A DNA stretch of 64,000 bases from Carpediemonas membranifera BICM (GCA_019828565.1 JAHDYR010000036.1:1-64000); one strand, 5' to 3'. Positions 445 through 19,658 are shown, numbered from the stretch's first letter. Notes: generated from the sequence alone by a model not told the origin. Translations and numbers: made by a program.

Positions 445-485
445 CGGTAGGGTCTGTCCCCGTACGACCCCCAAAACCCGCAATA
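445..485 (+). mobile_element. 41-bp stub of a variant right end of the Helitron-like element, embedded in telomeric repeats
   Basis: GACCCCCAAAACCCGCAATACCTTA matches the element terminus GACCCCCCAAAATCCGCAATACCTTA; it keeps a GGGTC/GACCC stem. Confidence 0.7.
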
Positions 486-526
486 CCTTACCTTACCTTA
501 CCTTACCTTACCTTACCTTACCTTAC
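486..526. repeat. Interstitial telomeric repeats (8 x CCTTA)
   Basis: Perfect CCTTA units directly before the TC start of copy 1. Confidence 0.95.
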
Positions 527-647
527 TCATCTGATGACCCCTGACCCTCAAGTCGAGGTGCCCCCGGGGGTTTTTCGGGGCGCTGAACACGCTGGTGCTA
601 TCAGATTTGGACGATATCCACTCAATCTCTGAGATCGCCTGAGCACA

Positions 648-3600
648 TCATCTGATGACCCCTGACCCTCAAGTCGAGGTGCCCCCGGGGGTTTTTCGGG
701 GCGCTGAACACGCTGGTGAAGTCCCCTATGCTCCATCTCTGCTCAATCACCGCCAAATCCCGGGGATCGAATTCCGCGACTCAAACCCAGAGTTGCAGAC
801 CTCAGCGTTCACAACCACCCCCGGCTAGACACGTTCTAGGCCCCATAGAGCACATTTCACTCTTCACCTCGCTGAAACCATGGTCAAGTTGATCCAGCCA
901 CGTCGCTCAGCTTCAATCACGCAAGGCGAGCGGACAACGAGTAGACCACACCCAGATGGAGGCTGAATCGCGACATGTGCGCTCTACAGCTGTCTATAGG
1001 CCCGCACGCATACATGGGTGCGAAGTCCCAGCCCTCCAATGTCACGTATTGACGAGGTCGTCAAAGCATATCTTTACTCAATCTTTTTGACCTCAAGTCG
1101 TGGACTGCCCGGGGGTTTCGGGGCGCTGAACACGCTGGTGAAGTCCCCTATGCTCCATCTCCGCCCCATCACCGCCAAATTCCGAGGATCGAATTCCGCG
1201 ACTCAAACCCAGAGTTGCAGACCTCAGCGTTCACAACCACCCCCGGCTAGACACGTTCTAGGCCCCATAGAGCACATTTCACTCTTCACCTCGCTGAAAC
1301 CATGGTCAAGTTGATCCAGCCACGTCGCTCAGCTTCAATCACGCAAGGCGAGCGGACAACGAGTAGACCACACCCAGATGAAGGCTGAATCGCGACATGT
1401 GCGCTCTACAGCTGTCTATAGGCCCGCACGCATACATGGGTGCGAAGTCCCAGCCCTCCAATGTCACGTATTGACGAGGTCGTCAAAGCATATCTTTACG
1501 CAATCTTTTTGACCTCAAGTCGTGGACTGCCCGGGGGTAGTTCGGGGCGCTGAACACGCTGGTGAAGTCCCCTATGCTCCATCTCCGCCCCATCACCGCC
1601 AAATTCCGAGGATCGAATTCCGCGACTCAAACCCAGAGTTGCAGACCTCAGCGTTCACAACCACCCCCGGCTAGACACGTTCTAGGCCCCATAGAGCACA
1701 TTTCACTCTTCATCTCGCTGAAACCATGGTCAAGTTGATCCAGCCACGTCGCTCAGCTTCAATCACGCAAGGCGAGCGGACAACGAGTAGACCACACCCA
1801 GATGGAGGCTGAATCGCGACATGTGCGCTCTACAGCTGTCTATAAGCCCGCACGCATACATGGGTGCGAAGTCCCAGCCCTCCAATGTCACGTATTGACG
1901 AGGTCGTCAAAGCATATCTTTACGCAATCTTTTTGACCTCAAGTCGTGGACTGCCCGGGGGTAGTTCGGGGCGCTGAACACGCTGGTGAAGTCCCCTATG
2001 CTCCATCTCCGCCCCATCACCGCCAAATTCCGAGGATCGAATTCCGCGACTCAAACCCAGAGTTGCAGACCTCAGCGTTCACAACCACCCCCGGCTAGAC
2101 ACGTTCTAGGCCCCATAGAGCACATTTCACTCTTCACCTCGCTGAAACCATGGTCAAGTTGATCCAGCCACGTCGCTCAGCTTCAATCACGCAAGGCGAG
2201 CGGACAACGAGTAGACCACACCCAGATGAAGGCTGAATCGCGACATGTGCGCTCTACAGCTGTCTATAGGCCCGCACGCATACATGGGTGCGAAGTCCCA
2301 GCCCTCCAATGTCACGTATTGACGAGGTCGTCAAAGCATATCTTTACTCAATCTTTTGACCTCAAGTCGTGGACTGCCCGGGGGTAGTTCGGGGCGCTGA
2401 ACACGCTGGTGAAGTCCCCTATGCTCCATCTCCGCCCCATCACCGCCAAATTCCGAGGATCGAATTCCGCGACTCAAACCCAGAGTTGCAGACCTCAGCG
2501 TTCACAACCACCCCCCGGCTAGACACGTTCTAGGCCCCATAGAGCACATTTCACTCTTCATCTCGCTGAAACCATGGTCAAGTTGATCCAGCCACGTCGC
2601 TCAGCTTCAATCACGCAAGGCGAGCGGACAACGAGTAGACCACACCCAGATGGAGGCTGAATCGCGACATGTGCGCTCTACAGCTGTCTATAGGCCCGCA
2701 CGCATACATGGGTGCGAAGTCCCAGCCCCTCAAATGTCACGTATTGACGAGGTCGTAAAAGCATATCTTTACTCAATCTTTTGACCTCAAGTCGTGGACT
2801 GCCCGGGGTAGTTCGGGGCGCTGAACACGCTGGTGAAGTCCCCTATGCTCCATCTCCGCCCCATCACCGCCAAATTCCGAGGATCGAATTCCGCGACTCA
2901 AACCCAGAGTTGCAGACCTCAGCGTTCACAACCACCCCCGGCTAGACACGTTCTAGGCCCCATAGAGCACATTTCACTCTTCACCTCGCTGAAACCATGG
3001 TCAAGTTGATCCAGCCACGTCGCTCAGCTTCAATCACGCAAGGCGAGCGGACAACGAGTAGACCACACCCAGATGAAGGCTGAATCGCGACATGTGCGCT
3101 CTACAGCTGTCTATAGGCCCGCACGCATACATGGGTGCGAAGTCCCAGCCCTCCAATGTCACGTATTGACGAGGTCGTCAAAAGCATATCTTTACGCAAT
3201 CTTTTGACCTCAAGTCGTGGACTGCCCGGGGGTAGTTCGGGGCGCTGAACACGCTGGTGAAGTCCCCTATGCTCCATCTCCGCCCCATCACCGCCAAATC
3301 CCGGGGATCGAATTCCGCGACTCAAACCCAGAGTTGCAGACCTCAGCGTTCACAACCACCCCCGGCTAGACACGTTCTAGGCCCCATAGAGCACATTTCA
3401 CTCTTCACCTCGCTGAAACCATGGTCAAGTTGATCCAGTCACGTCGCTCAGCTTCAATCACGCAAGGCGAGCGGACAACGAGTAGACCACACCCAGATGA
3501 AGGCTGAATCGCGACATGTGCGCTCTACAGCTGTCTATAGGCCCGCACGCATACATGGGTGCGAAGTCCCAGCCCTCCAATGTCACGTATTGACGAGGTC

Positions 3601-3719
3601 GTCAAAGCATATCTTTACTCAATCTTTTTGACCTCAAGTCGTGGACTGCCCGGGGGTAGTTCGGGGCGCTGAACACGCTGGTGAAGTCCCCTATGCTCCA
3701 TCTCCGCCCCATCTCCGCC
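648..3719 (+). repeat. ~422-bp tandem repeat, 7 full units + partial
   Basis: Anchor CTCAAGTCG recurs at about 668, 1092, 1514, 1938, 2361, 2786, 3209 and 3633. Confidence 0.95.
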
Positions 3720-3785
3720 TGGCCAGATCATGATGCGTCAATTGTCACATATCTGGAAGTCAAGTCTGTTGTAACGCGTCAGGTT

Positions 3786-3867
3786 TGAGCCATGGTGTAG
3801 ATGGTATAGCAGATGTTGGTGAATACAAGAGGTGGTAGGTTCGAATCCCTCCTGGCACATCCTTTTT
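3786..3867 (+). ncRNA. Degenerate tRNA-like Pol III cassette (copy 1)
   Basis: A-box TGGTGTAGATGGT, B-box GGTTCGAATCC, 6/7 acceptor-like stem TGAGCCA/TGGCACA, then T5; D, anticodon and T stems pair poorly. Confidence 0.7.
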
Positions 3868-3961
3868 GGACCTCGGCCATATCTCAGTCAATATTGGTCG
3901 TCATGCCTTGCAACTGCCCAGATTAGCTTGACTAGCCCTAAAGAACACATGGCAGTCAGAT

Positions 3962-4124
3962 TTATTCAAGTTGTTTGGACATGACGAACGCTAAGCCGTT
4001 CAGGACTGAGCCACTGGCGCCGAGCGCAAACAGCGCATCCACGACCGCCCAATAGCGGTCCGGGTTCTTGGACAGCACCTTGGCGCGCTGGAGTGCCTTG
4101 TGCATGACCTGGGACGGTACAGCA
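3962..4124 (-). pseudogene. Probable captured 3' fragment of an unidentified gene (also at about 8499-8661 and 11887-12049)
   Basis: Open frame ...VPSQVMHKALQRAKVLSKNPDRYWAVVDALFALGASGSVLNGLAFVMSKQLE* ending in TAA within AATAAA; absent from the autonomous copy and fused to the RepHel 3' remnant. Confidence 0.45.
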
Positions 4125-4526
4125 GCCGCAGCGCCCCCTGCACCCCACCAACGCATAGCCATGAGATGTCCACCCCAGGCCAAGCCAGTGCCCGCCCCTC
4201 AGCCCGCGTCTCCTATTGTGCACGACATCGAGAGCATATCGATCAGCTCGCCCTCTGCCTCGCCGTCCTCGCAAGGATACGTGCCCCCAAAGCGTTTGCG
4301 GACTACACCACCGCGCCGTATCCTCCCCAAGCGCTCGACTAGGGCCGCACCATCTCCCCTGAGAGAGTCAGCCCCCGCACCTGCCCGCAAGCTCGGCCGC
4401 CCTCGCTCTACCAAGTTCATCATCTACTCGGACAGCGAGGACGACGACGAACATCCCAAGAAGCCGAAGGGGTGCATCACACCGAAGAAGGAAGGACGGA
4501 CTTGCTTCAATCGTAAGAACTATTAG
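4125..4526 (+). pseudogene. 3' remnant of the RepHel ORF (also at about 8662-9064 and 12050-12451)
   Basis: Translates to QRIAMR.PPQAKPVPAPQPASP...KFIIYSDS, nearly identical to the C-terminus of 13532-18622 but with a different last ~25 aa. Confidence 0.9.
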
Positions 4527-5583
4527 TATCGAAGTGGCAGTGGCCACATGTAAATGATTAACGAACGTAGAATGGGTAGAGCGGGGGCTACGGTCGGCTG
4601 CGCCTCCCTCTGCCCCCCTGCACCCCCCGGAATTGAAGACGGGGGCTCCGTCGTTCCTCCGGCTTCGTTCGGCTTCGCTCCGCTCGGGCGCTCGTCGCTA
4701 CGCTCCTCCCGCCCTCCGCTACGCTACGCCTCTCTACGCCTCCGTCACTCTCTCTGCCCCCCTGCGACCCCCCGCGGACTCCGCCCATGGCCTGTAACTA
4801 CGTCAGATCACCCCACAAATTTTTGAATCTCGGGCTGTGATTTACATATGAAAAAAATAAATACCCCCATCCTCCTCAGAGCATGTAATTATGTATTGTA
4901 GTGCGCACCCGTGTTCTCTTCCATTCCATACGCGTCACTCTAGACGTATTCACTCACCATGGACACAAAAAGGCTCTATAAAAATTTGTTGAGGGCCTAA
5001 ATCAAAAATCGGGGAAAATAACGTTCCTACACGTACGCAACATGATACAGCAGTATACTCTGTTTAGCTCCAGCATCAATCCTTGAGGCCAGTAAAAACC
5101 GGTCTTTGAACGCGGTTCGCCAGATTCGGATGGATATCGTGACTCAATCACACTGCGAGAGACTTTCAAAAATTCCAAATCCAGCAGCCCGGAAGCCTCA
5201 GGCCTCGTGCTGTACTGCACAAGAAGTTAGCGATCGCGACTTTTGTCCTATAACTATTTATGCATAATTCAATGTAAAGACGACGGAGTTGAATAGAGCT
5301 TAGGGCGGCGCCTCCGAGCTGACACGCACAGCTATCCAGAGAAGCAATCCGCAGCCCTGAACGCCGTCTGTAAGCATGTGCTCTGACCTCAAAGTCCAAT
5401 TTTGAGGTCCCGTTTTTGAGCGGGAAAATTTAGTATAAAATATTTGCGTTGTCCCAGATTTCAATGCATGTTCGAAGGACCCCTGGGGTAGGCTACACGC
5501 TGCATGTGTCGCCTTCCCTGGCAGGGGCCCAGGGGTCCCGTACCGGGACCCCCCAAAATCCGCAATACCTTACCATAACTTAC

Positions 5584-5608
5584 CTTACCTTACCTTACCT
5601 TACCTTAC
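5584..5608. repeat. Interstitial telomeric spacer (5 x CTTAC)
   Basis: Lies between the right end of copy 1 and the TC start of copy 2. Confidence 0.95.
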
Positions 5609-8256
5609 TCATCTGATGACCCCTGACCCTCAAGTCGAGGTGCCCCCGGGGGTTTTTCGGGGCGCTGAACACGCTGGTGAAGTCCCCTATGCTCCATCTC
5701 TGCTCAATCACCGCCAAATCCCGGGGATCGAATTCCGCGACTCAAACCCAGAGTTGCAGACCTCAGCGTTCACAACCACCCCCGGCTAGACACGTTCTAG
5801 GCCCCATAGAGCACATTTCACTCTTCACCTCGCTGAAACCATGGTCAAGTTGATCCAGCCACGTCGCTCAGCTTCAATCACGCAAGGCGAGCGGACAACG
5901 AGTAGACCACACCCAGATGGAGGCTGAATCGCGACATGTGCGCTCTACAGCTGTCTATAGGCCCGCACGCATACATGGGTGCGAAGTCCCAGCCCTCCAA
6001 TGTCACGTATTGACGAGGTCGTCAAAGCATATCTTTACGCAATCTTTTTGACCTCAAGTCGTGGACTGCCCGGGGGTAGTTCGGGGCGCTGAACACGCTG
6101 GTGAAGTCCCCTATGCTCCATCTCCGCCCCATCACCGCCAAATTCCGAGGATCGAATTCCGCGACTCAAACCCAGAGTTGCAGACCTCAGCGTTCACAAC
6201 CACCCCCGGCTAGACACGTTCTAGGCCCCATAGAGCACATTTCACTCTTCACCTCGCTGAAACCATGGTCAAGTTGATCCAGCCACGTCGCTCAGCTTCA
6301 ATCACGCAAGGCGAGCGGACAACGAGTAGACCACACCCAGATGGAGGCTGAATCGCGACATGTGCGCTCTACAGCTGTCTATAAGCCCGCACGCATACAT
6401 GGGTGCGAAGTCCCAGCCCTCCAATGTCACGTATTGACGAGGTCGTCAAAGCATATCTTTACGCAATCTTTTGACCTCAAGTCGTGGACTGCCCGGGGGT
6501 AGTTCGGGGCGCTGAACACGCTGGTGAAGTCCCCTATGCTCCATCTCCGCCCCATCACCGCCAAATTCCGAGGATCGAATTCCGCGACTCAAACCCAGAG
6601 TTGCAGACCTCAGCGTTCACAACCACCCCCGGCTAGACACGTTCTAGGCCCCATAGAGCACATTTCACTCTTCATCTCGCTGAAACCATGGTCAAGTTGA
6701 TCCAGCCACGTCGCTCAGCTTCAATCACGCAAGGCGAGCGGACAACGAGTAGACCACACCCAGATGGAGGCTGAATCGCGACATGTGCGCTCTACAGCTG
6801 TCTATAGGCCCGCACGCATACATGGGTGCGAAGTCCCAGCCCTCAAATGTCACGTATTGACGAGGTCGTAAAAGCATATCTTTACTCAATCTTTTTGACC
6901 TCAAGTCGTGGACTGCCCGGGGGTAGTTCGGGGCGCTGAACACGCTGGTGAAGTCCCCTATGCTCCATCTCCGCCCCATCACCGCCAAATTCCGAGGATC
7001 GAATTCCGCGACTCAAACCCAGAGTTGCAGACCTCAGCGTTCACAACCACCCCCGGCTAGACACGTTCTAGGCCCCATAGAGCACATTTCACTCTTCACC
7101 TCGCTGAAACCATGGTCAAGTTGATCCAGCCACGTCGCTCAGCTTCAATCACGCAAGGCGAGCGGACAACGAGTAGACCACACCCAGATGAAGGCTGAAT
7201 CGCGACATGTGCGCTCTACAGCTGTCTATAGGCCCGCACGCATACATGGGTGCGAAGTCCCAGCCCTCCAATGTCACGTATTGACGAGGTCGTCAAAGCA
7301 TATCTTTACGCAATCTTTTGACCTCAAGTCGTGGACTGCCCGGGGGTAGTTCGGGGCGCTGAACACGCTGGTGAAGTCCCCTATGCTCCATCTCCGCCCC
7401 ATCACCGCCAAATCCCGGGGATCGAATTCCGCGACTCAAACCCAGAGTTGCAGACCTCAGCGTTCACAACCACCCCCGGCTAGACACGTTCTAGGCCCCA
7501 TAGAGCACATTTCACTCTTCACCTCGCTGAAACCATGGTCAAGTTGATCCAGCCACGTCGCTCAGCTTCAATCACGCAAGGCGAGCGGACAACGAGTAGA
7601 CCACACCCAGATGAAGGCTGAATCGCGACATGTGCGCTCTACAGCTGTCTATAGGCCCGCACGCATACATGGGTGCGAAGTCCCAGCCCTCCAATGTCAC
7701 GTATTGACGAGGTCGTCAAAGCATATCTTTACGCAATCTTTTGACCTCAAGTCGTGGACTGCCCGGGGGTAGTTCGGGGCGCTGAACACGCTGGTGAAGT
7801 CCCCTATGCTCCATCTCCGCCCCATCACCGCCAAATCCCGGGGATCGAATTCCGCGACTCAAACCCAGAGTTGCAGACCTCAGCGTTCACAACCACCCCC
7901 GGCTAGACACGTTCTAGGCCCCATAGAGCACATTTCACTCTTCACCTCGCTGAAACCATGGTCAAGTTGATCCAGTCACGTCGCTCAGCTTCAATCACGC
8001 AAGGCGAGCGGACAACGAGTAGACCACACCCAGATGAAGGCTGAATCGCGACATGTGCGCTCTACAGCTGTCTATAGGCCCGCACGCATACATGGGTGCG
8101 AAGTCCCAGCCCTCCAATGTCACGTATTGACGAGGTCGTCAAAGCATATCTTTACTCAATCTTTTTGACCTCAAGTCGTGGACTGCCCGGGGGTAGTTCG
8201 GGGCGCTGAACACGCTGGTGAAGTCCCCTATGCTCCATCTCCGCCCCATCTCCGCC
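5609..8256 (+). repeat. ~422-bp tandem repeat, 6 full units + partial
   Basis: Anchors at about 5629, 6053, 6476, 6900, 7323, 7746 and 8170. Confidence 0.95.
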
Positions 8257-8322
8257 TGGCCAGATCATGATGCGTCAATTGTCACATATCTGGAAGTCAA
8301 GTCTGTTGTAACGCGTCAGGTT

Positions 8323-8404
8323 TGAGCCATGGTGTAGATGGTATAGCAGATGTTGGTGAATACAAGAGGTGGTAGGTTCGAATCCCTCCTGGCACATCCT
8401 TTTT
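8323..8404 (+). ncRNA. Degenerate tRNA-like Pol III cassette (copy 2)
   Basis: Identical to 3786-3867. Confidence 0.7.
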
Positions 8405-10119
8405 GGACCTCGGCCATATCTCAGTCAATATTGGTCGTCATGCCTTGCAACTGCCCAGATTAGCTTGACTAGCCCTAAAGAACACATGGCAGTCAGATTT
8501 ATTCAAGTTGTTTGGACATGACGAACGCTAAGCCGTTCAGGACTGAGCCACTGGCGCCGAGCGCAAACAGCGCATCCACGACCGCCCAATAGCGGTCCGG
8601 GTTCTTGGACAGCACCTTGGCGCGCTGGAGTGCCTTGTGCATGACCTGGGACGGTACAGCAGCCGCAGCGCCCCCCTGCACCCCACCAACGCATAGCCAT
8701 GAGATGTCCACCCCAGGCCAAGCCAGTGCCCGCCCCTCAGCCCGCGTCTCCTATTGTGCACGACATCGAGAGCATATCGATCAGCTCGCCCTCTGCCTCG
8801 CCGTCCTCGCAAGGATACGTGCCCCCAAAGCGTTTGCGGACTACACCACCGCGCCGTATCCTCCCCAAGCGCTCGACTAGGGCCGCACCATCTCCCCTGA
8901 GAGAGTCAGCCCCCGCACCTGCCCGCAAGCTCGGCCGCCCTCGCTCTACCAAGTTCATCATCTACTCGGACAGCGAGGACGACGACGAACATCCCAAGAA
9001 GCCGAAGGGGTGCATCACACCGAAGAAGGAAGGACGGACTTGCTTCAATCGTAAGAACTATTAGTATCGAAGTGGCAGTGGCCACATGTAAATGATTAAC
9101 GAACGTAGAATGGGTAGAGCGGGGGCTACGGTCGGCTGCGCCTCCCTCTGCCCCCTGCACCCCCGGAATTGAGACGGGGGGCTCCGTTCGTTCCTCCGGC
9201 TTCGTTCGGCTTCGCTCCGCTCCGGGCGCTCGTCGCTACGCTCCTCCCGCCCTCCGCTACGCTACGCCTCTCTACGCCTCCGTCACTCTCTCTGCCCCCC
9301 TGCGACCCCCCGCGGACTCCGCCCATGGCCTGTAACTACGTCAGATCACCCCACAAATTTTTGAATCTCGGGCTGTGATTTACATATGAAAAAATAAATA
9401 CCCCCATCCTCCTCAGAGCATGTAATTATGTATTGTAGTGCGCACCCGTGTTCTCTTCCATTCCATACGCGTCACTCTAGACGTATTCACTCACCATGGA
9501 CACAAAAAGGCTCTATAAAAATTTGTTGAGGGCCTAAATCAAAAATCGGGGAAAATAACGTTCCTACACGTACGCAACATGATACAGCAGTATACTCTGT
9601 TTAGCTCCAGCATCAATCCTTGAGGCCAGTAAAACCGGTCTTTGAACGCGGTTCGCCAGATTCGGATGGATATCGTGACTCAATCACACTGCGAGAGACT
9701 TTCAAAAATTCCAAATCCAGCAGCCCGGAAGCCTCAGGCCTCGTGCTGTACTGCACAAGAAGTTAGCGATCGCGACTTTTGTCCTATAACTATTTATGCA
9801 TAATTCAATGTAAAGACGACGGAGTTGAATAGAGCTTAGGGCGGCGCCTCCGAGCTGACACGCACAGCTATCCAGAGAAGCAATCCGCAGCCCTGAACGC
9901 CGTCTGTAAGCATGTGCTCTGACCTCAAAGTCCAATTTTGAGGTCCCGTTTTTGAGCGGGAAAATTTAGTATAAAATATTTGCGTTGTCCCAGATTTCAA
10001 TGCATGTTCGAAGGACCCCTGGGGTAGGCTACACGCTGCATGTGTCGCCTTCCCTGGCAGGGGCCCAGGGGTCCCGTACCGGGACCCCCCAAAATCCGCA
10101 ATACCTTACCATAACTTAC

Positions 10120-10144
10120 CTTACCTTACCTTACCTTACCTTAC
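10120..10144. repeat. Interstitial telomeric spacer (5 x CTTAC)
   Basis: Lies between copies 2 and 3. Confidence 0.95.
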
Positions 10145-10265
10145 TCATCTGATGACCCCTGACCCTCAAGTCGAGGTGCCCCCGGGGGTTTTTCGGGGCG
10201 CTGAACACGCTGGTGCTATCAGATTTGGACGATATCCACTCAATCTCTGAGATCGCCTGAGCACA

Positions 10266-11643
10266 TCATCTGATGACCCCTGACCCTCAAGTCGAGGTGC
10301 CCCCGGGGGTTTTTCGGGGCGCTGAACACGCTGGTGAAGTCCCCTATGCTCCATCTCTGCTCAATCACCGCCAAATCCCGGGGATCGAATTCCGCGACTC
10401 AAACCCAGAGTTGCAGACCTCAGCGTTCACAACCACCCCCGGCTAGACACGTTCTAGGCCCCATAGAGCACATTTCACTCTTCACCTCGCTGAAACCATG
10501 GTCAAGTTGATCCAGCCACGTCGCTCAGCTTCAATCACGCAAGGCGAGCGGACAACGAGTAGACCACACCCAGATGGAGGCTGAATCGCGACATGTGCGC
10601 TCTACAGCTGTCTATAGGCCCGCACGCATACATGGGTGCGAAGTCCCAGCCCTCAAATGTCACGTATTGACGAGGTCGTAAAAGCATATCTTTACTCAAT
10701 CTTTTTGACCTCAAGTCGTGGACTGCCCGGGGGTAGTTCGGGGCGCTGAACACGCTGGTGAAGTCCCCTATGCTCCATCTCCGCCCCATCACCGCCAAAT
10801 TCCGAGGATCGAATTCCGCGACTCAAACCCAGAGTTGCAGACCTCAGCGTTCACAACCACCCCCGGCTAGACACGTTCTAGGCCCCATAGAGCACATTTC
10901 ACTCTTCACCTCGCTGAAACCATGGTCAAGTTGATCCAGCCACGTCGCTCAGCTTCAATCACGCAAGGCGAGCGGACAACGAGTAGACCACACCCAGATG
11001 AAGGCTGAATCGCGACATGTGCGCTCTACAGCTGTCTATAGGCCCGCACGCATACATGGGTGCGAAGTCCCAGCCCTCCAATGTCACGTATTGACGAGGT
11101 CGTCAAAGCATATCTTTACGCAATCTTTTGACCTCAAGTCGTGGACTGCCCGGGGGTAGTTCGGGGCGCTGAACACGCTGGTGAAGTCCCCTATGCTCCA
11201 TCTCTGCTCAATCACCGCCAAATCCCGGGGATCGAATTCCGCGACTCAAACCCAGAGTTGCAGACCTCAGCGTTCACAACCACCCCCGGCTAGACACGTT
11301 CTAGGCCCCCATAGAGCACATTTCACTCTTCACCTCGCTGAAACCATGGTCAAGTTGATCCAGTCACGTCGCTCAGCTTCAATCACGCAAGGCGAGCGGA
11401 CAACGAGTAGACCACACCCAGATGAAGGCTGAATCGCGACATGTGCGCTCTACAGCTGTCTATAGGCCCGCACGCATACATGGGTGCGAAGTCCCAGCCC
11501 TCCAATGTCACGTATTGACGAGGTCGTCAAAGCATATCTTTACTCAATCTTTTGACCTCAAGTCGTGGACTGCCCGGGGGTAGTTCGGGGCGCTGAACAC
11601 GCTGGTGAAGTCCCCTATGCTCCATCTCCGCCCCATCTCCGCC
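10266..11643 (+). repeat. ~422-bp tandem repeat, 3 full units + partial
   Basis: Anchors at about 10286, 10710, 11133 and 11557. Confidence 0.95.
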
Positions 11644-11709
11644 TGGCCAGATCATGATGCGTCAATTGTCACATATCTGGAAGTCAAGTCTGTTGTAACG
11701 CGTCAGGTT

Positions 11710-11792
11710 TGAGCCATGGTGTAGATGGTATAGCAGATGTTGGTGAATACAAGAGGTGGTAGGTTCGAATCCCTCCTGGCACATCCTTTTTT
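11710..11792 (+). ncRNA. Degenerate tRNA-like Pol III cassette (copy 3)
   Basis: Same as copies 1-2, with a T6 tail. Confidence 0.7.
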
Positions 11793-13531
11793 GGACCTCG
11801 GCCATATCTCAGTCAATATTGGTCGTCATGCCTTGCAACTGCCCAGATTAGCTTGACTAGCCCTAAAGAACACATGGCAGTCAGATTTATTCAAGTTGTT
11901 TGGACATGACGAACGCTAAGCCGTTCAGGACTGAGCCACTGGCGCCGAGCGCAAACAGCGCATCCACGACCGCCCAATAGCGGTCCGGGTTCTTGGACAG
12001 CACCTTGGCGCGCTGGAGTGCCTTGTGCATGACCTGGGACGGTACAGCAGCCGCAGCGCCCCCTGCACCCCACCAACGCATAGCCATGAGATGTCCACCC
12101 CAGGCCAAGCCAGTGCCCGCCCCTCAGCCCGCGTCTCCTCTTGTGCACGACATCGAGAGCATATCGATCAGCTCGCCCTCTGCCTCGCCGTCCTCGCAAG
12201 GATACGTGCCCCCAAAGCGTTTGCGGACTACACCACCGCGCCGTATCCTCCCCAAGCGCTCGACTAGGGCCGCACCATCTCCCCTGAGAGAGTCAGCCCC
12301 CGCACCTGCCCGCAAGCTCGGCCGCCCTCGCTCTACCAAGTTCATCATCTACTCGGACAGCGAGGACGACGACGAACATCCCAAGAAGCCGAAGGGGTGC
12401 ATCACACCGAAGAAGGAAGGACGGACTTGCTTCAATCGTAAGAACTATTAGTATCGAAGTGGCAGTGGCCACATGTAAATGATTAACGAACGTAGAATGG
12501 GTAGGCAGGGCTACGGTCGGCTGCGCCTCCCTCTGCCCCCTGCACCCCCGGAATTGAAGACGGGGGGCTCCGTCATTCCTCCGGCTTCGTTCGGCTTCGC
12601 TCCGCTCCGGGCGCTCGTCGCTACGCTCCTCCCGCCCTCCGCTACGCTACACCTCTCTAAGCCTCCGTCACTCTCTCTGCCCCCTGCGACCCCCCGCGGA
12701 CTCCGCCCATGGCCTGTAACTACGTCAGATCACCCCACAAATTTTTGAATCTCGGGCTGTGATTTACATATGAAAAAATAAATACCCCCATCCTCCTCAG
12801 AGCATGTAATTATGTATTGTAGTGCGCACCCGTGTTCTCTTCCATTCCATACGCGTCACTCTAGACGTATTCACTCACCATGGACACAAAAAGGCTCTAT
12901 AAAAATTTGTTGAGGGCCTAAATCAAAAATCGGGGAAAATAACGTTCCTACACGTACGCAACATGATACAGCAGTATACTCTGTTTAGCTCCAGCATCAA
13001 TCCTTGAGGCCAGTAAAACCGGTCTTTGAACGCGGTTCGCCAGATTCGGATGGATATCGTGACTCAATCACACTGCGAGAGACTTTCAAAAATTCCAAAT
13101 CCAGCAGCCCGGAAGCCTCAGGCCTCGTGCTGTACTGCACAAGAAGTTAGCGATCGCGACTTTTGTCCTATAACTATTTATGCATAATTCAATGTAAAGA
13201 CGACGGAGTTGAATAGAGCTTAGGGCGGCGCCTCCGAGCTGACACGCACAGCTATCCAGAGAAGCAATCCGCAGCCCTGAACGCCGTCTGTAAGCATGTG
13301 CTCTGACCTCAAAGTCCAATTTTGAGGTCCCGTTTTTGAGCGGGAAAATTTAGTATAAAATATTTGCGTTGTCCCAGATTTCAATGCATGTTCGAAGGAC
13401 CCCTGGGGTAGGCTACACGCTGCATGTGTCGCCTTCCCTGGCAGGGGCCCAGGGGTCCCGTACCGGGACCCCCCAAAATCCGCAATACCTTACCATAACT
13501 TACCCAGTGGATTAACGAGGACTCGCCCCAC

Positions 13532-16500
13532 ATGCAGCTCGTCACTGCACCCGGTCAGGTCGGAACCCCATCGTACTGGCACAACGTCAAGCGTCACCTC
13601 CACGCTATTGTCATGACGATAGGAGCTCCACACCTCTTCTTCACATTCACTGTCGACCCGGCGTACATCACCAGCGAGATCCGCCGCCTGTATCGTGAGC
13701 TGAACGTCGACACCGGCCACTACAGCTTTGGAGACAACCCCGTGGACGAAACGCGCATTGCTCACGCATACTTCGAGCACATCACGCTTCTGCTCATGGC
13801 CGCCATCCCCTCTGCTCGACACATATTCAAGCGCATGGAGGAGCAAGAGCAGCTCGGCCTCCCCCACTACCACGTGGCTCTCTGGTGCGAGACTGAAGGC
13901 GTGCCCGATATTGGCGATGAGCTTGACCGCAGAGAGTTCTCCCCAGCGTTCGCAGAGCTAATCAACACATTTATCGGCGTCCAGCTCACCGAAGACGCTG
14001 CCCGGTATCAACTGCACACCCACAACTCATCATGCGAGGCCGCAGACGGCACATGCACAGAGGGCTACCCAAAGCCGGTCAACGATACTGCCCGCTACTC
14101 ATCCAAAGAGCGCCAGTGGCTCTACCGCCGAGAGGAGGCTGACCGCAACGTCGTGGAGTACTGCCCGCAGCTTCTGAAGTTCACCCACGGCCAGATGCAC
14201 GTCCGACCCATCTTCAACGCAGAGGGCATCGACTACATCGTCAAGTACATGCTGAAAACTGACGCCGAGACCGAGATCGACGTCACCGACAACAAGGCTG
14301 ACAAGGCCTACAGCACGTTCGCAACCATGCGTGTCATCTCCGTCTACACCATGGCATGGAGACTGCTTGGATACCGCACTTACTCATCCAGCATGGGCTA
14401 CAAGCACGTCCCAATCGACCAGCTGCCGCAACAGCGACTGTACTCTCCTTTCCATGGCTTCTGGGCAGCCCGGCTCGGCCCGATCGAGATGTACTTCCTG
14501 CGCCCAGAGAGTCTGGACAAACTCACGATCGTCCAGTTCTACCAGTGGTACGAACTCAAGCGCATCACTGTCGAGCAGTACGACGAGCTGGCAGCAGAGG
14601 ACGAGCCCATGCTTGTCAACGCAGACCACGCGGACCACGACCCCACCCTGTACAAGCAATACTTCTTCCGCTATCTCGTCAAGCGCAGACTCAAGATCAA
14701 GGCCGTGTCCTTCAACATGACCAGCCCAGAGGATGGCGAGAGGCACTACCAGGCGCTGCTGTTCCTGTCCAAGCCCTGGCGTTCTGACAAGGAGATTCGG
14801 TGCGGCAAGGGCGAGAACCCCGGCCCCTTCACGTCTTACTACAACGCATGCCGGCGCGAAGGCCTAGTGCACTCCACACCCCGCAACATGGTCGCCGACC
14901 TTGCCGAGTGCATCAAGACGAACGCCGACGCCGGAACCCTCGACCTCCAGGGCGCGATCGCGATGCTCAGAGCTGCTCTCCGCCGCAGGTTCTCACAGGA
15001 CGAGATCATGGCAGCGCTCACCGGCATCTCCACGCACGCGTTCTTTACAACAATGCAGCGCTACACCCTCAACTCCTTTAACGAGGCGTTCGTGAAGACT
15101 ACCACGGTCCTGCAGCTGTTCGACAAGCCCCTTCGCGTCTATACGCCCCAACCGGATATCACACTCAACGAGCAGCAGGCAGAAATCAAGTCGTTCGTCA
15201 GGCAGCGTATGCGGACCAGCTGTCACTTCATTGCCGTCGTCATGGGCAAGGCTGGCTCGGGCAAGTCACTCCTGATCAGAGAGATCGCCCACATGATTGC
15301 AGCAGACTTTGGACGCCTCGTGCTGGTCACAGGCTCCACTGGTGTGTCCGCTGCCCTCCTTGACGGCGCCACGATCCACTCGTTCTTCAAGTACAACGTC
15401 AGCGAGAAGTTCGAGGCACCCTCGCCTGGGTCCACCGAGCGCCTCATCCTCTCAAAGGTGTCGACCATCATCATCGACGAGGCTATGATGCTGAGCAGAG
15501 CTGATATCGCTGACATCAGCGACACACTGCGCCAGATCAGAGGTGGCGAGCTCCCCTTCGGCGGAGTCAACATGATCTTCGTGGGTGACCCGAACCAGCT
15601 TCCGCCCGTGCCAAAGAAGCACGCGGCTGTCCTATCCGCACTGCACTATCACTGGGAGCAGCACAACACGGCCAAGCTATTCGAGCTCCAGAGCTCATTC
15701 CGTCAGCAGGCCGACCCGGCGTTCACGGCCATCCTCGACGGCATCGCGTCTACGAAGATTGACAGCAGAAGACTCACGCCACTCTACAAGCGCGCAGTAC
15801 CAGACACGCCCGAGTCACTCAAGCTGATGATCAAGCTCATGCTTGAGGGGCACACCATGATCACAGCCCGCCGAGACAGAGCCCACAGCCTCAACCGCAT
15901 TGTCGTGAACACACTCGCAAAGTTAGACGGCTGCCCAGTCACTCAACTCGTGTCATATGTCGCCTGGGCGAAGGTTATCGATGGCGTTCCCGGGTTCTCG
16001 CGTTTCTCGTGCGGCACTGCCAACGTCCACTCGGAGCTAGAAGACACGTCGGCCAAAAGAGACTACCACGACCGCCTCGAGCGCATCGACTTCTGTGTCG
16101 GCTGCCGCGTCATCCTCACGTGGAACGTCATCACCGAGCTCGGCCTAGTCAACGGTGCGAAGGCAACCATCCTCTCGATCAACCAGTCCGACCCGTCAGT
16201 AGAGGTGCAGATGGCCGACTCAGGCCAGGTCCACATCATCCGCGAGATGTCCGTGAAACAGGGCATCTTCACACACACGTTCATCCCACTCATGCCGGCG
16301 TACGTCCTGACAATTCACAAGGCTCAGGGGCAGACGATCCCCCGTCTCATCGTCGACCTGCGGGAGAACATGAACTACAAGCAGGACCGCCGCTCTAACG
16401 ACTTCTGGGAGGTTGGACAGCTGTACACCGCCCTCTCTCGCGCCCCAACTCTCGACGCGCTCACGATATTCGGCGGAGTTGACACGCACGACAAGATGAC

Positions 16501-18622
16501 CGTCAACGGATTCACATTCAACACTGTCAAGCCGGTCCCAGAGCTGTTTCGCCCAATCCATACGAAGGTCGTCACATCCCGTGTGGACTTCCTGCACAGG
16601 AAGATGCTTCCCCTGACCGACATGATCGTCAGGCACACCACTCGAGAGGCCTTCGTCGACAACTCAGGCGTCAGCGTCGACGACAACACCAACGAGGTCG
16701 TCCGCAAGATGCTCAAGGTCAAAGACTGGATCAGGTTCGCCAACGCAGCGACCATGTACGCCAAGCGCAGCACCACCCGCGGCCCAGCCCTGCCCCGCAA
16801 GCGCCTCATCCCCGTTGCTCCGAAGCTGAAGAAGACTAAGCGCAAGCAGACCAAGCGTAACCCCCGCAAGCCCGGCGCGAAGAGCAAGCCCAGAGTGAGA
16901 CACATAGACACGGCCTTCAGCGACGCAGAGCTCGAATCAGACGTCGAACTCGAGGCGCTGACCGACTATGAGTGCGAAGACAACGTCGCTGCCATTGGGT
17001 TCGAGCCTCTCAACGCCACGTACCGCTCACTACACGAGCTGAACCTCACCCGCGTCCAGCGGAGCCTCGTACAGCGCTTCCGTCGCGACAACTTCTACCG
17101 CATCGAGAAACAGAACGAGGTGCACGAGCTCGCCGCAGCAGGCATCATCAGCGCGGAGGAGACCACTGCCATTGACCAATGGGTGCAGGAGGCGTCAAGC
17201 AAAGACCCTGGCACAGTCATATCGATCATCAGCAACGACACCGACGCGGCGAAAGAACTCCTCGACACAGCAGAGGCCGAGGACGCCAACGAGGCAATCC
17301 AGACTATTCTCTCCCGCATCGAAGAAGCACGCCGCGCCCAAGAGCATCCTCCAGCCGCCCACAAGCCTGCCCAGCCCAAGACCACGACCAAGCGCAAGGA
17401 CAAGCGGAAGCACAAACGCAAGAACAAGCCCACCATCGTCTTCGACATGGGCTCTCCCGAGTCCCCGCCTACACCTGACTACAGCAAGGGAGACGCGACA
17501 TACGCGCTCACTGTCCAACACCGCCGCAAGTCCCGCGAGAGAACAGAGCCGCCCACGCCCACCATTCCGGTAGTCGAGCCTCCAACGCAGCCAGAGGACG
17601 AGATGGCCAGCAAGTGCCCGCTGCTCAACCCCAGAAAGATCACGACCCGGGACTACAGCAACGCTCGGCTCTACGACAACGACGGCGGTGGCGACTGCGC
17701 CATCTTTGCCCTCGCCATGCGCACCAAGGCGTTCTACGACTTCTTCATGTCGCTTGGCACCGGCGACGACGTGGATGGACGCGTCAAGGTCTTCCGGCAG
17801 CGGTTCAGGCAGTACTGCTGTGACTACAGAGACCCCCACTCCCTCATATTCCTCGGCTTTGCCCCCGAGAGAGCTCACACGATCACGCTCGAGGGAACGT
17901 TCTTGAATATTCCCACCGTGTGGGCTTTCTACTGTCACGAGTGCGGCATCAAGAACGACTCGCTGATTCTGTACAAGAATCAGAACACGATTGAGTACAC
18001 CATCAGGCCTGCAGACGATGACCCCGACCGCCGCGTGCCCAAGTGCCAAGACGTCATCAACCCAGACAAGGCCATTCTCGCGACCGGCATCCGCTACAAC
18101 GACGGCATTCACTTTATGTGTGTCTTCCCCGAAGACGGGATCGAACGCCAGCTCGAGTACGTGGACTACTCGGCTGCAACGAGAGAAAGCGCCCTGAATC
18201 CAATCGAGATCTCTGACGATGACGAGCCGCCGCAGCGCCCCCCTGCCCCCCGCCAACGCATAGCCATGAGACGTCCACCACAGGCCAAGCCAGTGCCCGC
18301 CCCTCAGCCCGCGTCTCCTATTGTGCACGACATCGAGAGCATATCGATCAGCTCGCCCTCTGCCTCGCCGTCCTCGCAAGGATACGTGCCCCCAAAGCGT
18401 TTGCGGACTACACCACCGCGCCGTATCCTCCCCAAGTGCTCGACTAGGGCCGCACCATCTCCCCTGAGAGAGTCAACCCCCGCACCTGCCCGCAAGCTCG
18501 GCCGTCCGCGCTCAACCAAGTTCATCATCTACTCGGACAGCGACGATGATCCTCAGAAGCGGAGAGGAAGCCACTTGGCCAAGAAGGGCAAGCGGAACAG
18601 CTTCCACAACAAGCATGATTAA
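13532..18622 (+). CDS. Rep (HUH endonuclease)-PIF1 helicase-OTU-like protease polyprotein, N-terminally truncated, 1696 aa
   Basis: Rep: GTPSYW, GAPHLFFTFT, EQLGLPHYHVALW (HUH), QLHTHNSSC, YIVKYMLK. PIF1: GKAGSGKS, IIIDEAMM, FGGVNMIFVGDPNQLPPV, GLVNG, AYVLTIHKAQGQT, GQLYTALSR. OTU-like: DGGGDCAIFALA ... YNDGIHF. Confidence 0.95.
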   Translation: MQLVTAPGQVGTPSYWHNVKRHLHAIVMTIGAPHLFFTFTVDPAYITSEIRRLYRELNVDTGHYSFGDNPVDETRIAHAYFEHITLLLMAAIPSARHIFKRMEEQEQLGLPHYHVALWCETEGVPDIGDELDRREFSPAFAELINTFIGVQLTEDAARYQLHTHNSSCEAADGTCTEGYPKPVNDTARYSSKERQWLYRREEADRNVVEYCPQLLKFTHGQMHVRPIFNAEGIDYIVKYMLKTDAETEIDVTDNKADKAYSTFATMRVISVYTMAWRLLGYRTYSSSMGYKHVPIDQLPQQRLYSPFHGFWAARLGPIEMYFLRPESLDKLTIVQFYQWYELKRITVEQYDELAAEDEPMLVNADHADHDPTLYKQYFFRYLVKRRLKIKAVSFNMTSPEDGERHYQALLFLSKPWRSDKEIRCGKGENPGPFTSYYNACRREGLVHSTPRNMVADLAECIKTNADAGTLDLQGAIAMLRAALRRRFSQDEIMAALTGISTHAFFTTMQRYTLNSFNEAFVKTTTVLQLFDKPLRVYTPQPDITLNEQQAEIKSFVRQRMRTSCHFIAVVMGKAGSGKSLLIREIAHMIAADFGRLVLVTGSTGVSAALLDGATIHSFFKYNVSEKFEAPSPGSTERLILSKVSTIIIDEAMMLSRADIADISDTLRQIRGGELPFGGVNMIFVGDPNQLPPVPKKHAAVLSALHYHWEQHNTAKLFELQSSFRQQADPAFTAILDGIASTKIDSRRLTPLYKRAVPDTPESLKLMIKLMLEGHTMITARRDRAHSLNRIVVNTLAKLDGCPVTQLVSYVAWAKVIDGVPGFSRFSCGTANVHSELEDTSAKRDYHDRLERIDFCVGCRVILTWNVITELGLVNGAKATILSINQSDPSVEVQMADSGQVHIIREMSVKQGIFTHTFIPLMPAYVLTIHKAQGQTIPRLIVDLRENMNYKQDRRSNDFWEVGQLYTALSRAPTLDALTIFGGVDTHDKMTVNGFTFNTVKPVPELFRPIHTKVVTSRVDFLHRKMLPLTDMIVRHTTREAFVDNSGVSVDDNTNEVVRKMLKVKDWIRFANAATMYAKRSTTRGPALPRKRLIPVAPKLKKTKRKQTKRNPRKPGAKSKPRVRHIDTAFSDAELESDVELEALTDYECEDNVAAIGFEPLNATYRSLHELNLTRVQRSLVQRFRRDNFYRIEKQNEVHELAAAGIISAEETTAIDQWVQEASSKDPGTVISIISNDTDAAKELLDTAEAEDANEAIQTILSRIEEARRAQEHPPAAHKPAQPKTTTKRKDKRKHKRKNKPTIVFDMGSPESPPTPDYSKGDATYALTVQHRRKSRERTEPPTPTIPVVEPPTQPEDEMASKCPLLNPRKITTRDYSNARLYDNDGGGDCAIFALAMRTKAFYDFFMSLGTGDDVDGRVKVFRQRFRQYCCDYRDPHSLIFLGFAPERAHTITLEGTFLNIPTVWAFYCHECGIKNDSLILYKNQNTIEYTIRPADDDPDRRVPKCQDVINPDKAILATGIRYNDGIHFMCVFPEDGIERQLEYVDYSAATRESALNPIEISDDDEPPQRPPAPRQRIAMRRPPQAKPVPAPQPASPIVHDIESISISSPSASPSSQGYVPPKRLRTTPPRRILPKCSTRAAPSPLRESTPAPARKLGRPRSTKFIIYSDSDDDPQKRRGSHLAKKGKRNSFHNKHD

Positions 18623-18662
18623 ATCGGTAATTGTACAGACGTGATTACTGTAACAGCGGGTG

Positions 18663-18881
18663 CTACGGTCGGCTGCGCCTCCCTCTGCCCCCCTGCACCC
18701 CCCGGAATTGAAGACGGGGGGGCTCCGTTCGTTCCTCCGGCTTCGTTCGGCTTCGCTTCGCTCCGGGCGCTCGTCGCTACGCTCCTCCCGCCCTCCGCTA
18801 CGCTACACCTCTCTAAGCCTCCGTCACTCTCTCTGCCCCCCTGCGACCCCCCGCGGACTCCGCCCATGGCCTGTAACTACG
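18663..18881 (-). other. Cluster of C-GNA-G ssDNA mini-hairpin motifs downstream of the ORF (also at about 4587-4802, 9126-9340 and 12511-12724)
   Basis: 15 CTNCG pentamers counted on the + strand in ~220 bp (CGNAG on the - strand), including GCGAAGC, GCGTAGC and GGCGCAGCC. Confidence 0.7.
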
Positions 18882-19551
18882 TCAGATCACCCCACAAATT
18901 TTTGAATCTCGGGCTGTGATTTACATATGAAAAAATAAATACCCCCATCCTCCTCAGAGCATGTAATTATGTATTTTAGTGCGCACCCGTGTTCTCTTCC
19001 ATTCCATACGCGTCACTCTAGACGTATTCACTCACCATGGACACAAAAAGGCTCTATAAAAATTTGTTGAGGGCCTAAATCAAAAATCGGGGAAAATAAC
19101 GTTCCTACACGTACGCAACATAATACAGCAGTATACTCTGTTTAGCTCCAGCATCAATCCTTGAGGCCAGTAAAACCGGTCTTTGAACGCGGTTCGCCAG
19201 ATTCGGATGGATATCGTGACTCAATCACACTGCGAGAGACTTTCAAAAATTCCAAATCCAGCAGCCCGGAAGCCTCAGGCCTCGTGCTGTACTGCACAAG
19301 AAGTTAGCGATCGCGACTTTTGTCCTATAACTATTTATGCATAATTCAATGTAAAGGCGACGGAGTTGAACAGCGAATTTTTTGTGCCCCCTAGGAAACC
19401 CATAGCACTGTACAATGCAGTAATCCGCAGCCCTGAACACCGTCTGTAGCGTGTGCTCTGACCTCAAAGTCCAATTTTGAGGTCCCGTTTTTGAGCGTGA
19501 AAATTTAGTATAAAATATTTGCGTTGTCCCAGATTTCAATGCATGTTCGAA

Positions 19552-19658
19552 GGACCCCTGGGGTAGGCTACACGCTGCATGTGTCGCCTTCCCTGGCAGG
19601 GGCCCAGGGGTCCCGTACCGGGACCCCCCAAAATCCGCAATACCTTACCATAACTTAC
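19552..19658 (+). other. Element right terminus: nested inverted repeats, perfect 9-bp hairpin and telomere-like tail
   Basis: GGACCCCTGGG (19552-62) / CCCAGGGGTCC (19603-13); GGGGTCCCG-TAC-CGGGACCCC (19607-27); ends AATACCTTACCATAACTTAC. Identical in all four long copies. Confidence 0.9.

Follow-up and report, generated by a model that had tools for sequence, protein, structure and literature searches.

In the free-living protist Carpediemonas membranifera BICM, contig 37 (JAHDYR010000036.1 in GCA_019828565.1; positions 1-64000, hereafter the window) bears at its left end a head-to-tail stack of Helitron-like units, one of which encodes a Rep nuclease fused to a Pif1-type helicase (RepHel). 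These units probably represent a telomere-specialised Helitron family that stacks at the chromosome ends of this organism, whose 24.2 Mb genome is assembled in 69 contigs. Attachment to termini is end-restricted, polar and anchored by the 3' side of the unit, with or without telomerase tracts. The right (3') end is joined to the terminus of the time, which was either a short telomerase tract or an eroded end within unique DNA, a gypsy element or an older unit. Units have lost variable amounts of their distal (5') side, and telomerase repeatedly healed breaks inside them at matches of 2-3 nucleotides (nt). The constant end would be made by the encoded Rep. The terminal 19-kb array in a single orientation, with telomere tracts and a constant right end, that an earlier note on this DNA had described is indeed present.

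Confinement of the family to chromosome ends

Genome-wide mapping of the 219-nt right end gave 34 copies, all 34 within stacks, which are found at six contig ends and in one internal relic. Every copy at the starts of contigs 37, 31, 38 and 46 lies on the + strand, and every copy at the ends of contigs 15 and 3 lies on the - strand. Hence, the right end points inward in 6/6 terminal arrays. In the contig 31 array, 17 right ends are spread across 49 kb behind ~550 nt of telomere. Helitron Rep sequences occur at five loci in the genome (contigs 37, 38 and 1, and two in contig 26), 5/5 within stacks, and the four terminal ones are all on the + strand near contig starts. No dispersed copy of either the right end or the Rep was found in 24.2 Mb. 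The earlier note had proposed a Helitron-like family confined to chromosome ends with the 3' side of the open reading frame (ORF) inward; the mapping agrees, and the internal, randomly oriented copies that would have argued against this reading are not seen.

Four right-end copies, belonging to an older subfamily, lie in the middle of contig 1. They are part of an internal 63-kb cluster (C1:881168-943809, L016-L022) with the same stacking, including a right end that abuts a truncated ORF. Several units point leftward and are followed by one block pointing rightward, that is, two arrays head-to-head. The cluster is dense with other transposons and telomere repeats are absent from it. It resembles the fossil of two chromosomes fused end to end, or possibly a contig mis-join.

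Repetitive long reads could in principle have produced such arrays by misassembly, and contig tips are visibly uncorrected. However, the same junction types are found in independent contigs and in different contexts, and the transition from array to unique DNA occurs at defined junctions, so that we give almost no credence to an assembly artefact.

Organization of the array in the window

From the contig tip inward, the array consists of telomere, a right-end stub, three ORF-less units and one ORF-bearing unit, in a single orientation throughout. The terminal telomere (1-444) reads (CCTTA)n on the + strand, the G strand being TAAGG; it is noisy over the first ~170 nt and at 262-350, which is uncorrected long-read sequence at the contig tip. 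The divergent stub (445-485, + strand, 41 nt), located between telomere tracts, is a unit that was eroded nearly whole and then healed by telomerase. It is followed by a tract of ~8 repeats in register with the stub tail (486-526), which finishes ...CTTAC immediately 5' of unit 1.

Unit 1 (527-5583, + strand) starts with TCATCTGATG... and contains 1.8 copies of a 121-bp repeat (527-748) and 7.2 of a 424-bp satellite (684-3719). Its 3' module (3720-5583) includes a remnant of the ORF C-terminus (~4121-4445), a 145-nt module (4641-4784) and the right-end module. A linker of 25 nt of telomere repeats in register (5584-5608) separates it from unit 2 (5609-10119, + strand, 6.2 satellite copies), and a second in-register linker of 25 nt (10120-10144) separates unit 2 from unit 3 (10145-13503, + strand, 1.8 copies of the 121-bp repeat and 3.2 of the satellite). 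ORF-less units thus follow a common plan, with the 5' end TCATCTGATG..., the 121-bp repeat, three to seven satellite copies and a 1.9-kb 3' module that includes the final ~325 nt of the ORF. In a genome search the left end TCATCTGATG... was confined to contig 37; a family-wide left terminus is therefore not established.

Unit 4 (13504-19658, + strand) bears the ORF and is 5'-truncated. It abuts the right end of unit 3 without a telomere tract, and the 27 nt that precede its ATG occur nowhere else in the genome. Its own right end abuts a truncated gypsy pol outside the element (19659-21430, + strand). This Ty3/gypsy fragment encodes RNase H, an integrase zinc finger and the integrase core and lacks its 5' half; its frame is open from the junction base onward, with no repeat between. 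The chromosome formerly ended within this gypsy element.

A tRNA-like stretch with a GGTTCGAATCC box is found at 3786-3867, and units 2 and 3 have it at the corresponding position. In the array as a whole, this stretch included, ARAGORN predicted no tRNA and Rfam no known RNA.

A constant right end with variable neighbours

The right-end (RTS) module of unit 4 (19440-19658, + strand) comprises two hairpins and a tail, and the three ORF-less units carry copies of it on the same strand (5364-5583, 9900-10119 and 13284-13503). A perfect hairpin (19607-19627; 9-bp stem, 3-nt loop) is followed by a 15-nt spacer and a telomere-like tail (19643-19658). The terminus is identical in all four units, a perfect 21-nt hairpin being followed by 31 nt up to the end ...CCTTACCATAACTTAC. 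Its predicted folding beats all 200 shuffles (z = -3.2). Across 34/34 genomic copies the terminal 200 nt are 99-100% identical. This holds for the subfamily of contigs 1 and 46 too, yet the sequences 500-1,000 nt upstream are essentially unalignable with those of this subfamily. A 70%-diverged right end in contig 15 has a different hairpin and has retained the two runs of C and of A as well as the tail (CCTTAC-T-ATAACTTAC), with its non-telomeric ATAA. No terminal inverted repeats were detected (the two 200-nt ends share an inverted match of 8 nt at best, which is the chance level), and no target-site duplication was found at the junctions examined.

Upstream of the right end, a GC-rich module of ~145 nt (18712-18863, - strand) is also present in the ORF-less units (4641-4784 in unit 1, as above, 9172-9322 and 12558-12706). 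It is 93-99% identical among three RepHel lineages and contains 4-6 GCGNAGC motifs (GNA-triloop mini-hairpins) on the minus strand, with 0 on the plus strand. It is a candidate priming site for the complementary strand.

Toward the interior, the right end is found in 21 distinct junction types. It is complete to its final base in 20 of them and lacks that base in one. Fourteen types lack a telomere tract, other DNA following directly after ...CATAACTTAC (once ...CTTA); 13 of these types keep the last base of the right end and one lacks it. The partners are the 424-bp satellite (three points), the ORF (three points), the 3' module (two points), the ORF of a second Helitron lineage, gypsy pol and unique DNA. 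In the other seven types, 6-25 further telomere letters follow, in register with the tail in 7/7 (p about 1e-5 under random register). On their far side, the telomere tracts stop at a variable phase and, where the intact sequence is known, with a match of 2-3 nt to the repeat, a signature of telomerase healing of an eroded end.

Microhomology at the seven informative tract-free junctions amounts to 2, 0, 0, 2, 1, 0 and 0 nt. The sum of 5 nt is not above chance (p about 0.1), and microhomology was accordingly rejected as support for a priming mechanism.

The boundaries between telomere and subtelomere on contig 14 (L001, 323/324), contig 24 (L002, reverse strand, 158/159) and contig 31 (L003, 546/547) all read ...CTTAC/AGG. 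Half of the tract-free right-end junctions likewise have A as their first letter, in many cases AG. Such a bias could stem from a preference of the step that forms or joins the ends.

The junctions bear on the possibility that the units inserted into the C strand of telomere repeats, as in Paramecium, and that truncations and tract-free junctions arose later by erosion or deletion. The three window units that have a 5' end do lie between telomere repeats, their 5' TC being preceded by ...CTTAC, and Paramecium elements share the orientation and the internal satellites. On the other hand, 14/21 junction types have no tract at all, and the interrupted elements have left no 5' half anywhere in the genome. 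Moreover, the three complete-looking units with their identical 25-nt linkers are found on contig 37 only and may reflect a single event followed by duplication. Overall, an origin by this route appears unlikely.

The Rep-helicase ORF

The ORF of unit 4 (13532-18622, + strand) encodes 1,696 amino acids (aa), and its open frame extends back to 13505. Pfam identifies a Helitron_like_N domain (E 2e-7) and, C-terminal to the Rep, a PIF1 domain (E 4.5e-26). The Rep motifs FTFT (13625-13651), HYH (13859-13885) and Y-x3-Y (14231-14257), all on the + strand, are intact and are invariant across a 5-lineage alignment. The Pif1-type helicase extends on the same strand from its Walker A motif (15245-15268), which is present, to about 16450. 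Comparison with the older subfamily over 500-1,200 codons gave dN/dS values of 0.18-0.25, with no stops. Such purifying selection on the ORF, together with a 200-nt end that is invariant among unalignable subfamilies, marks a propagating element.

The Pfam Helitron_like_N match begins at profile position 88 and the open frame reaches the junction 13504/13505, which indicates that the window ORF is 5'-truncated. A full-length relative of 2,191 aa has ~600 residues N-terminal to the region that aligns with it. Thus, the earlier note was right about the HUH Rep and PIF1 domains and not about autonomy, since the unit that it took for the autonomous member is cut at its junction with unit 3.

The same note had proposed an OTU-like domain, which went undetected: Pfam was negative even at E 1, a sequence search of the PDB yielded noise only, and hhalign against a Helitron OTU domain aligned 11 columns, which is not significant. 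What is left is a conserved Cys box (D-N-x-G-G-G-x-C-A; 17675-17716, + strand) and a conserved His box (18104-18127, + strand), kept in three lineages of 26-27% mutual identity, and a language-model search in which the three best named neighbours are OTU clusters (0.87-0.89, below the trust line). An OTU-like or cysteine-protease-like domain at the C-terminus is only suggested by these features.

There is no exact protein on record for the window ORF. NCBI lists C. membranifera proteins that are 97% identical to it, as well as its 33%-identical paralogues, these entries being located on contigs 38 and 26. An intron was considered as the cause of the difference between the window ORF and the copy on contig 1, and was rejected: the contig 1 copy is interrupted at C1:930990 (L021, about 5990) by an inserted DNA-transposon end, ...ACAGTATG. 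This insert end matches the giant transposons of the C. membranifera genome that end in CATACTGT.

Pfam detected no endonuclease domain in the window ORF and, in agreement with the earlier note, no reverse transcriptase (RT) domain in any ORF of the array. The architecture, with the 3' end inward, 5' truncation and short telomere tracts, is that of telomeric retroelements, and a gene with a telomerase RBD domain is present in the genome. One may thus imagine that telomerase, or some other RT supplied in trans, copied transcripts ending in the tail onto the G overhang. Against this RNA-mediated addition, the array contains neither RT nor poly(A), the contig 1 difference is a DNA-transposon insertion and no evidence of intron loss is left, and the tRNA-like piece is recognised by neither ARAGORN nor Rfam. 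In addition, the genome paper reports no expression (PMC8516963). We consider such a route very unlikely.

Proposed array growth and exchange between ends

The innermost units of contigs 37, 31, 38 and 3 are 3.5-7% diverged and the remaining units at most 1%; the innermost unit of contig 15 is young. This gradient mostly fits a putative outward growth of the arrays. The stubs of 41 nt in the window and 28 nt on contig 31 indicate that a unit can be eroded almost completely before healing and the next attachment. Furthermore, the 5' portions lost from truncated units are found nowhere in the genome, which excludes nested insertion and argues that the stacks grew at a free end. Arrays would therefore grow by repeated rounds of terminal attachment, erosion and telomerase healing, and the units would later be shuffled between ends by homologous recombination in their shared 3' module.

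Identical junction types and multi-unit blocks are common to contigs 31, 38, 15 and 37, with copies that differ by only 0.1-0.5%. The recurrence of junction types in differing contexts points to homologous exchange in the 3' module, which shuffles and spreads units. These data, and a layout identical to that of yeast Y' elements, would also suit a Y'-like subtelomeric duplicon containing a dead Helitron and spread by break-induced replication or by unequal exchange via the internal telomere-like tract. However, 14 different tract-free junctions at nearly one base are beyond the reach of homologous copying, and recombination requires more than a 5-nt seed. The purifying selection acting on the ORF and the invariant 200-nt end also mark an element that propagates. 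A duplicon carrying a dead Helitron is thus an improbable explanation of the arrays.

Models of attachment

For the attachment step itself, we give a tentative preference, well short of confidence, to one-ended rolling-circle transfer, in which the GTAAG-led strand is joined to the terminal 3'-OH, as the earlier note had suggested. Rep would nick at the right-end boundary and remain on the 5' end of the strand led by GTAAG..., which the Pif1 helicase would peel toward the tip of the donor chromosome. The single-stranded 3' overhang of the recipient end would then attack the phosphotyrosine, and the complementary strand would be filled in last. As in an IS91-like transfer, no target cleavage would be needed and the whole distal array, together with its telomere, could move. 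We favour this step because the joins are precise with microhomology at chance level, because no left end is conserved, because lineage 2A (described below) attaches without a telomere-like tail and because a hairpin module specific to the minus strand is conserved. A 3' overhang being a natural acceptor for an HUH enzyme, the model would also explain the complete lack of internal copies.

Almost as likely is a primed copying of the element, a DNA-level version of target-primed reverse transcription. Here, plus-strand single-stranded DNA released by Rep would be cut after ...CTTAC, the 3' end of a chromosome would pair with or abut the tail, and a host polymerase would extend it. Such a priming accounts better than the transfer for the tail complementary to the G strand, which is kept in the diverged right end and in a metagenomic relative, and for the 7/7 tract junctions in register. 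The junction that lacks the last C and has a 2-nt match would correspond to pairing one step inside the tail, a 1-nt filler would fit as well, and the polarity is that of the canonical Helitron strand choice. Conversely, overall microhomology is not above chance, the conserved non-telomeric ATAA weakens pairing, lineage 2A attaches although it has no telomere-like tail, and the minus-strand hairpin module is left without a role. We hold this possibility as doubtful, too.

Several observations weigh against our interpretation and must be set beside it. With respect to one-ended transfer, Helitrons are known from biochemistry to mobilise the plus strand, starting at the left end and finishing at the right end. 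The ORF-less units retain a 5' module, a hint that the left end also matters. The junction without the final C has a 2-nt match and another junction has a 1-nt filler; such irregularities are not predicted by a simple transesterification. With respect to the family as a whole, this lineage has no full-length copy in the assembly and the window ORF lacks its N-terminal part. Recombination clearly contributes, since many junction types are shared by several ends. The assembly has only four contig ends with a telomere, and the long telomeres of two of them (contigs 14 and 24) have no element, which is thus not obligatory at a chromosome end. All arrays rest on a single long-read assembly. Finally, the genome paper describes intronless 'helitron-related helicase endonucleases' and reports no RNA-seq expression for them (PMC8516963).

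Related lineages and the host telomere

Two more RepHel lineages, 2A and 2B, are found at C38:22084-30000 (L011) and C26:1-15886 (L025-L026) and have ~33% protein identity to that of the window. They have the same polarity, have right ends of their own and sit just inside or beside arrays of the window family. The end of lineage 2A, ...TATATATACTGTTTA, has no telomere-like tail and is joined to two different truncated satellites; the copy on contig 38 is 5'-truncated precisely at the start of the window-family array. The end of lineage 2B, ...GTTAATTA, is followed by three CCTTA repeats, and its ORF on contig 26 is an apparently complete open frame of 1,601 aa. The 424-bp satellite is also present upstream of the 2B ORF, which indicates a shared 5' module.

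A relative in a marine metagenome (GCA_047518385.1, L028 141-170) is 34% identical and has the unbroken 2,191-aa ORF mentioned above. About 320 nt upstream of this ORF lies a sequence that resembles the right end, with a C-run and an A-run, followed by CCTTA-type repeats (CCTTACCTTAC-TTACCTTAC). This arrangement suggests that the element is probably associated with telomeres in another organism that uses the same repeat. A metagenome scan for further relatives yielded two distant loci only, with 23% identity, and a second homologue search gave nothing closer. The contigs of two more distant relatives contain a 5' satellite and no telomere repeats. None of the large homologue matches was, by name, from Paramecium or Oscheius tipulae.

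The telomere repeat of C. membranifera appears to be undescribed so far. Carpediemonas is a relative of Giardia. In the latter, the telomere repeat is TAGGG, with TAAGG as a documented variant (PMC10999387). A Telomerase_RBD match (C39:742208-742561, - strand) lies in an open frame of 834 aa and scores 31.5 bits, above the Pfam cut-off; the gene is likely the TERT of C. membranifera.

According to the genome paper, ORC/Cdc6 and a number of canonical repair factors are missing from the host; the paper covers neither telomeres nor terminal arrays (PMC8516963). It also describes a 'Pif1-like' clade, specific to Carpediemonas, of four genes (J8273_5069, 5070, 6038 and 6100), two of them adjacent, and raises the possibility that this clade assists origin-independent replication (PMC8516963). 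In NCBI, the Helitron ORFs on contig 26 (KAG9392097.1 and KAG9392098.1) and contig 38 (P0001) are labelled 'DNA helicase Pif1 like'. The published 'Pif1-like' clade probably corresponds to these subtelomeric Helitron ORFs, and our results bear on its interpretation (PMC8516963).

Comparison with known systems

The element has the features of the Helitron-like superfamily, namely a two-Tyr HUH Rep, a fused PIF1 helicase, a hairpin near the 3' end and neither terminal inverted repeats nor target-site duplication. Its separation from the known groups rests on termini, flanks and domains. Helitron1 elements have 5'-TC and CTRR-3' ends, a hairpin ~10-12 nt from the end and insert between A and T, whereas the 3' end is here CTTAC, the hairpin is 31 nt away, the flanks are telomere repeats or arbitrary DNA and a 5' TC is found in contig 37 only. 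Helitron2 and Helentron elements have asymmetric terminal inverted repeats, hairpins at both ends and a T-T/C target, with an AP endonuclease in Helentrons; a C-terminal cysteine-protease-like domain is common in this group. In contrast to them, the Carpediemonas element has no significant complementarity between 5' and 3' ends, no endonuclease domain and flanks other than TT.

IS91/ISCR elements are bacterial and encode a two-tyrosine HUH transposase without a fused helicase. Their constant and essential end lies downstream of the gene, the other end being variable or dispensable, and they insert beside a tetranucleotide target inside replicons, not at chromosome ends. The two-Tyr HUH enzyme, the constant end downstream of the gene and the variable other end are shared with the Carpediemonas element.

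HeT-A/TART/TAHRE of Drosophila, GilM/GilT of Giardia and the Penelope-like Athena/Terminon elements likewise form polar head-to-tail arrays at chromosome ends, with the 3' side inward; they too lose 5' sequence to a variable extent and attach to eroded ends. Athena in addition resembles our element in that its 3' tail is complementary to the G overhang and its units are separated by short telomere tracts. Unlike the HUH nuclease-helicase element studied here, which has no RT, these telomeric retroelements encode RT and move via RNA. Yeast Y' elements and fungal telomere-linked helicase genes are likewise subtelomeric, helicase-encoding and tandem in one orientation, with short tracts between copies and spread by recombination. 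However, their helicase is of the RecQ/Sgs1 type, without an HUH nuclease, and they have neither a precise terminus joined to many unrelated sequences nor variable 5' truncation; a Y'-type duplicon is bounded by telomere tracts or homologous sequence only.

The closest parallel is that of Paramecium aurelia, whose germline chromosomes are capped by Helitrons located within telomere repeats with an absolute orientation bias, the left end being outward (bioRxiv 10.1101/2025.11.06.686955; PMC13085455). These telomeric Helitrons, reported in November 2025, have right ends in C-strand-like letters, internal satellites and ORF-less derivatives (10.1101/2025.11.06.686955). Rep-Pif1 Helitrons limited to chromosome ends, the right end inward, large internal satellites and a spread of ORF-less derivatives over many ends are thus common to both systems. 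In Paramecium, a complete copy is bordered by repeats left and right, which is taken to reflect insertion into the C-rich strand. The Carpediemonas units are nearly all 5'-truncated and arranged head-to-tail, with two thirds of the junction types onto non-telomeric DNA; telomere flanks on both sides are seen only in the three window units, which may be one event. The ORFs also differ in size, ~1,700-2,200 aa in Carpediemonas versus 9-10 kb (about 3,000 aa or more) in Paramecium. Finally, Carpediemonas is a metamonad whose telomere repeat is the pentamer TAAGG and which has no split between germline and soma, the Paramecium clade being compared here by its description.

Other Helitron-like sequences have been found near telomeres. 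In O. tipulae, helitron-like elements were reported in 2020 on 11/12 subtelomeric extensions, their terminus, polarity and junctions not being reported (PMC8022731). Telomeric Helitron fragments of Drosophila biarmipes are degraded, randomly oriented and also present elsewhere in the genome (PMC6581046), and Helitron-like subtelomeric repeats have been reported in cnidarians. The earlier note knew of no described telomere-targeting Helitron, a statement that the work on P. aurelia (10.1101/2025.11.06.686955) and O. tipulae (PMC8022731) had already superseded. The C. membranifera family is the second clear telomere-specialised Helitron after that of Paramecium (2025), not the first. What is new is the 3'-anchored stacking of 5'-truncated units directly on non-telomeric ends, and the host lineage.

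Biological significance

Telomere-specialised transposons were long regarded as retroelements. A second case in a distant supergroup suggests that the telomere niche is open to rolling-circle elements more generally. The family would be a DNA counterpart of the telomeric retrotransposons of flies, with fly-like stacks on eroded ends beside a probable telomerase. C. membranifera, a culturable organism with a compact 24-Mb genome, is well suited to the study of Helitron strand-transfer chemistry at a natural 3' end. It is conceivable, though we regard it as rather doubtful, that the Rep-helicase uses the single-stranded 3' end of the chromosome as the strand-transfer acceptor, a nick at an internal right end starting a one-ended rolling-circle transfer by which the entire distal array and the donor telomere are copied onto an uncapped or broken end. 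If true, this would provide C. membranifera with a DNA-only means of chromosome healing and telomere lengthening that operates beside telomerase.

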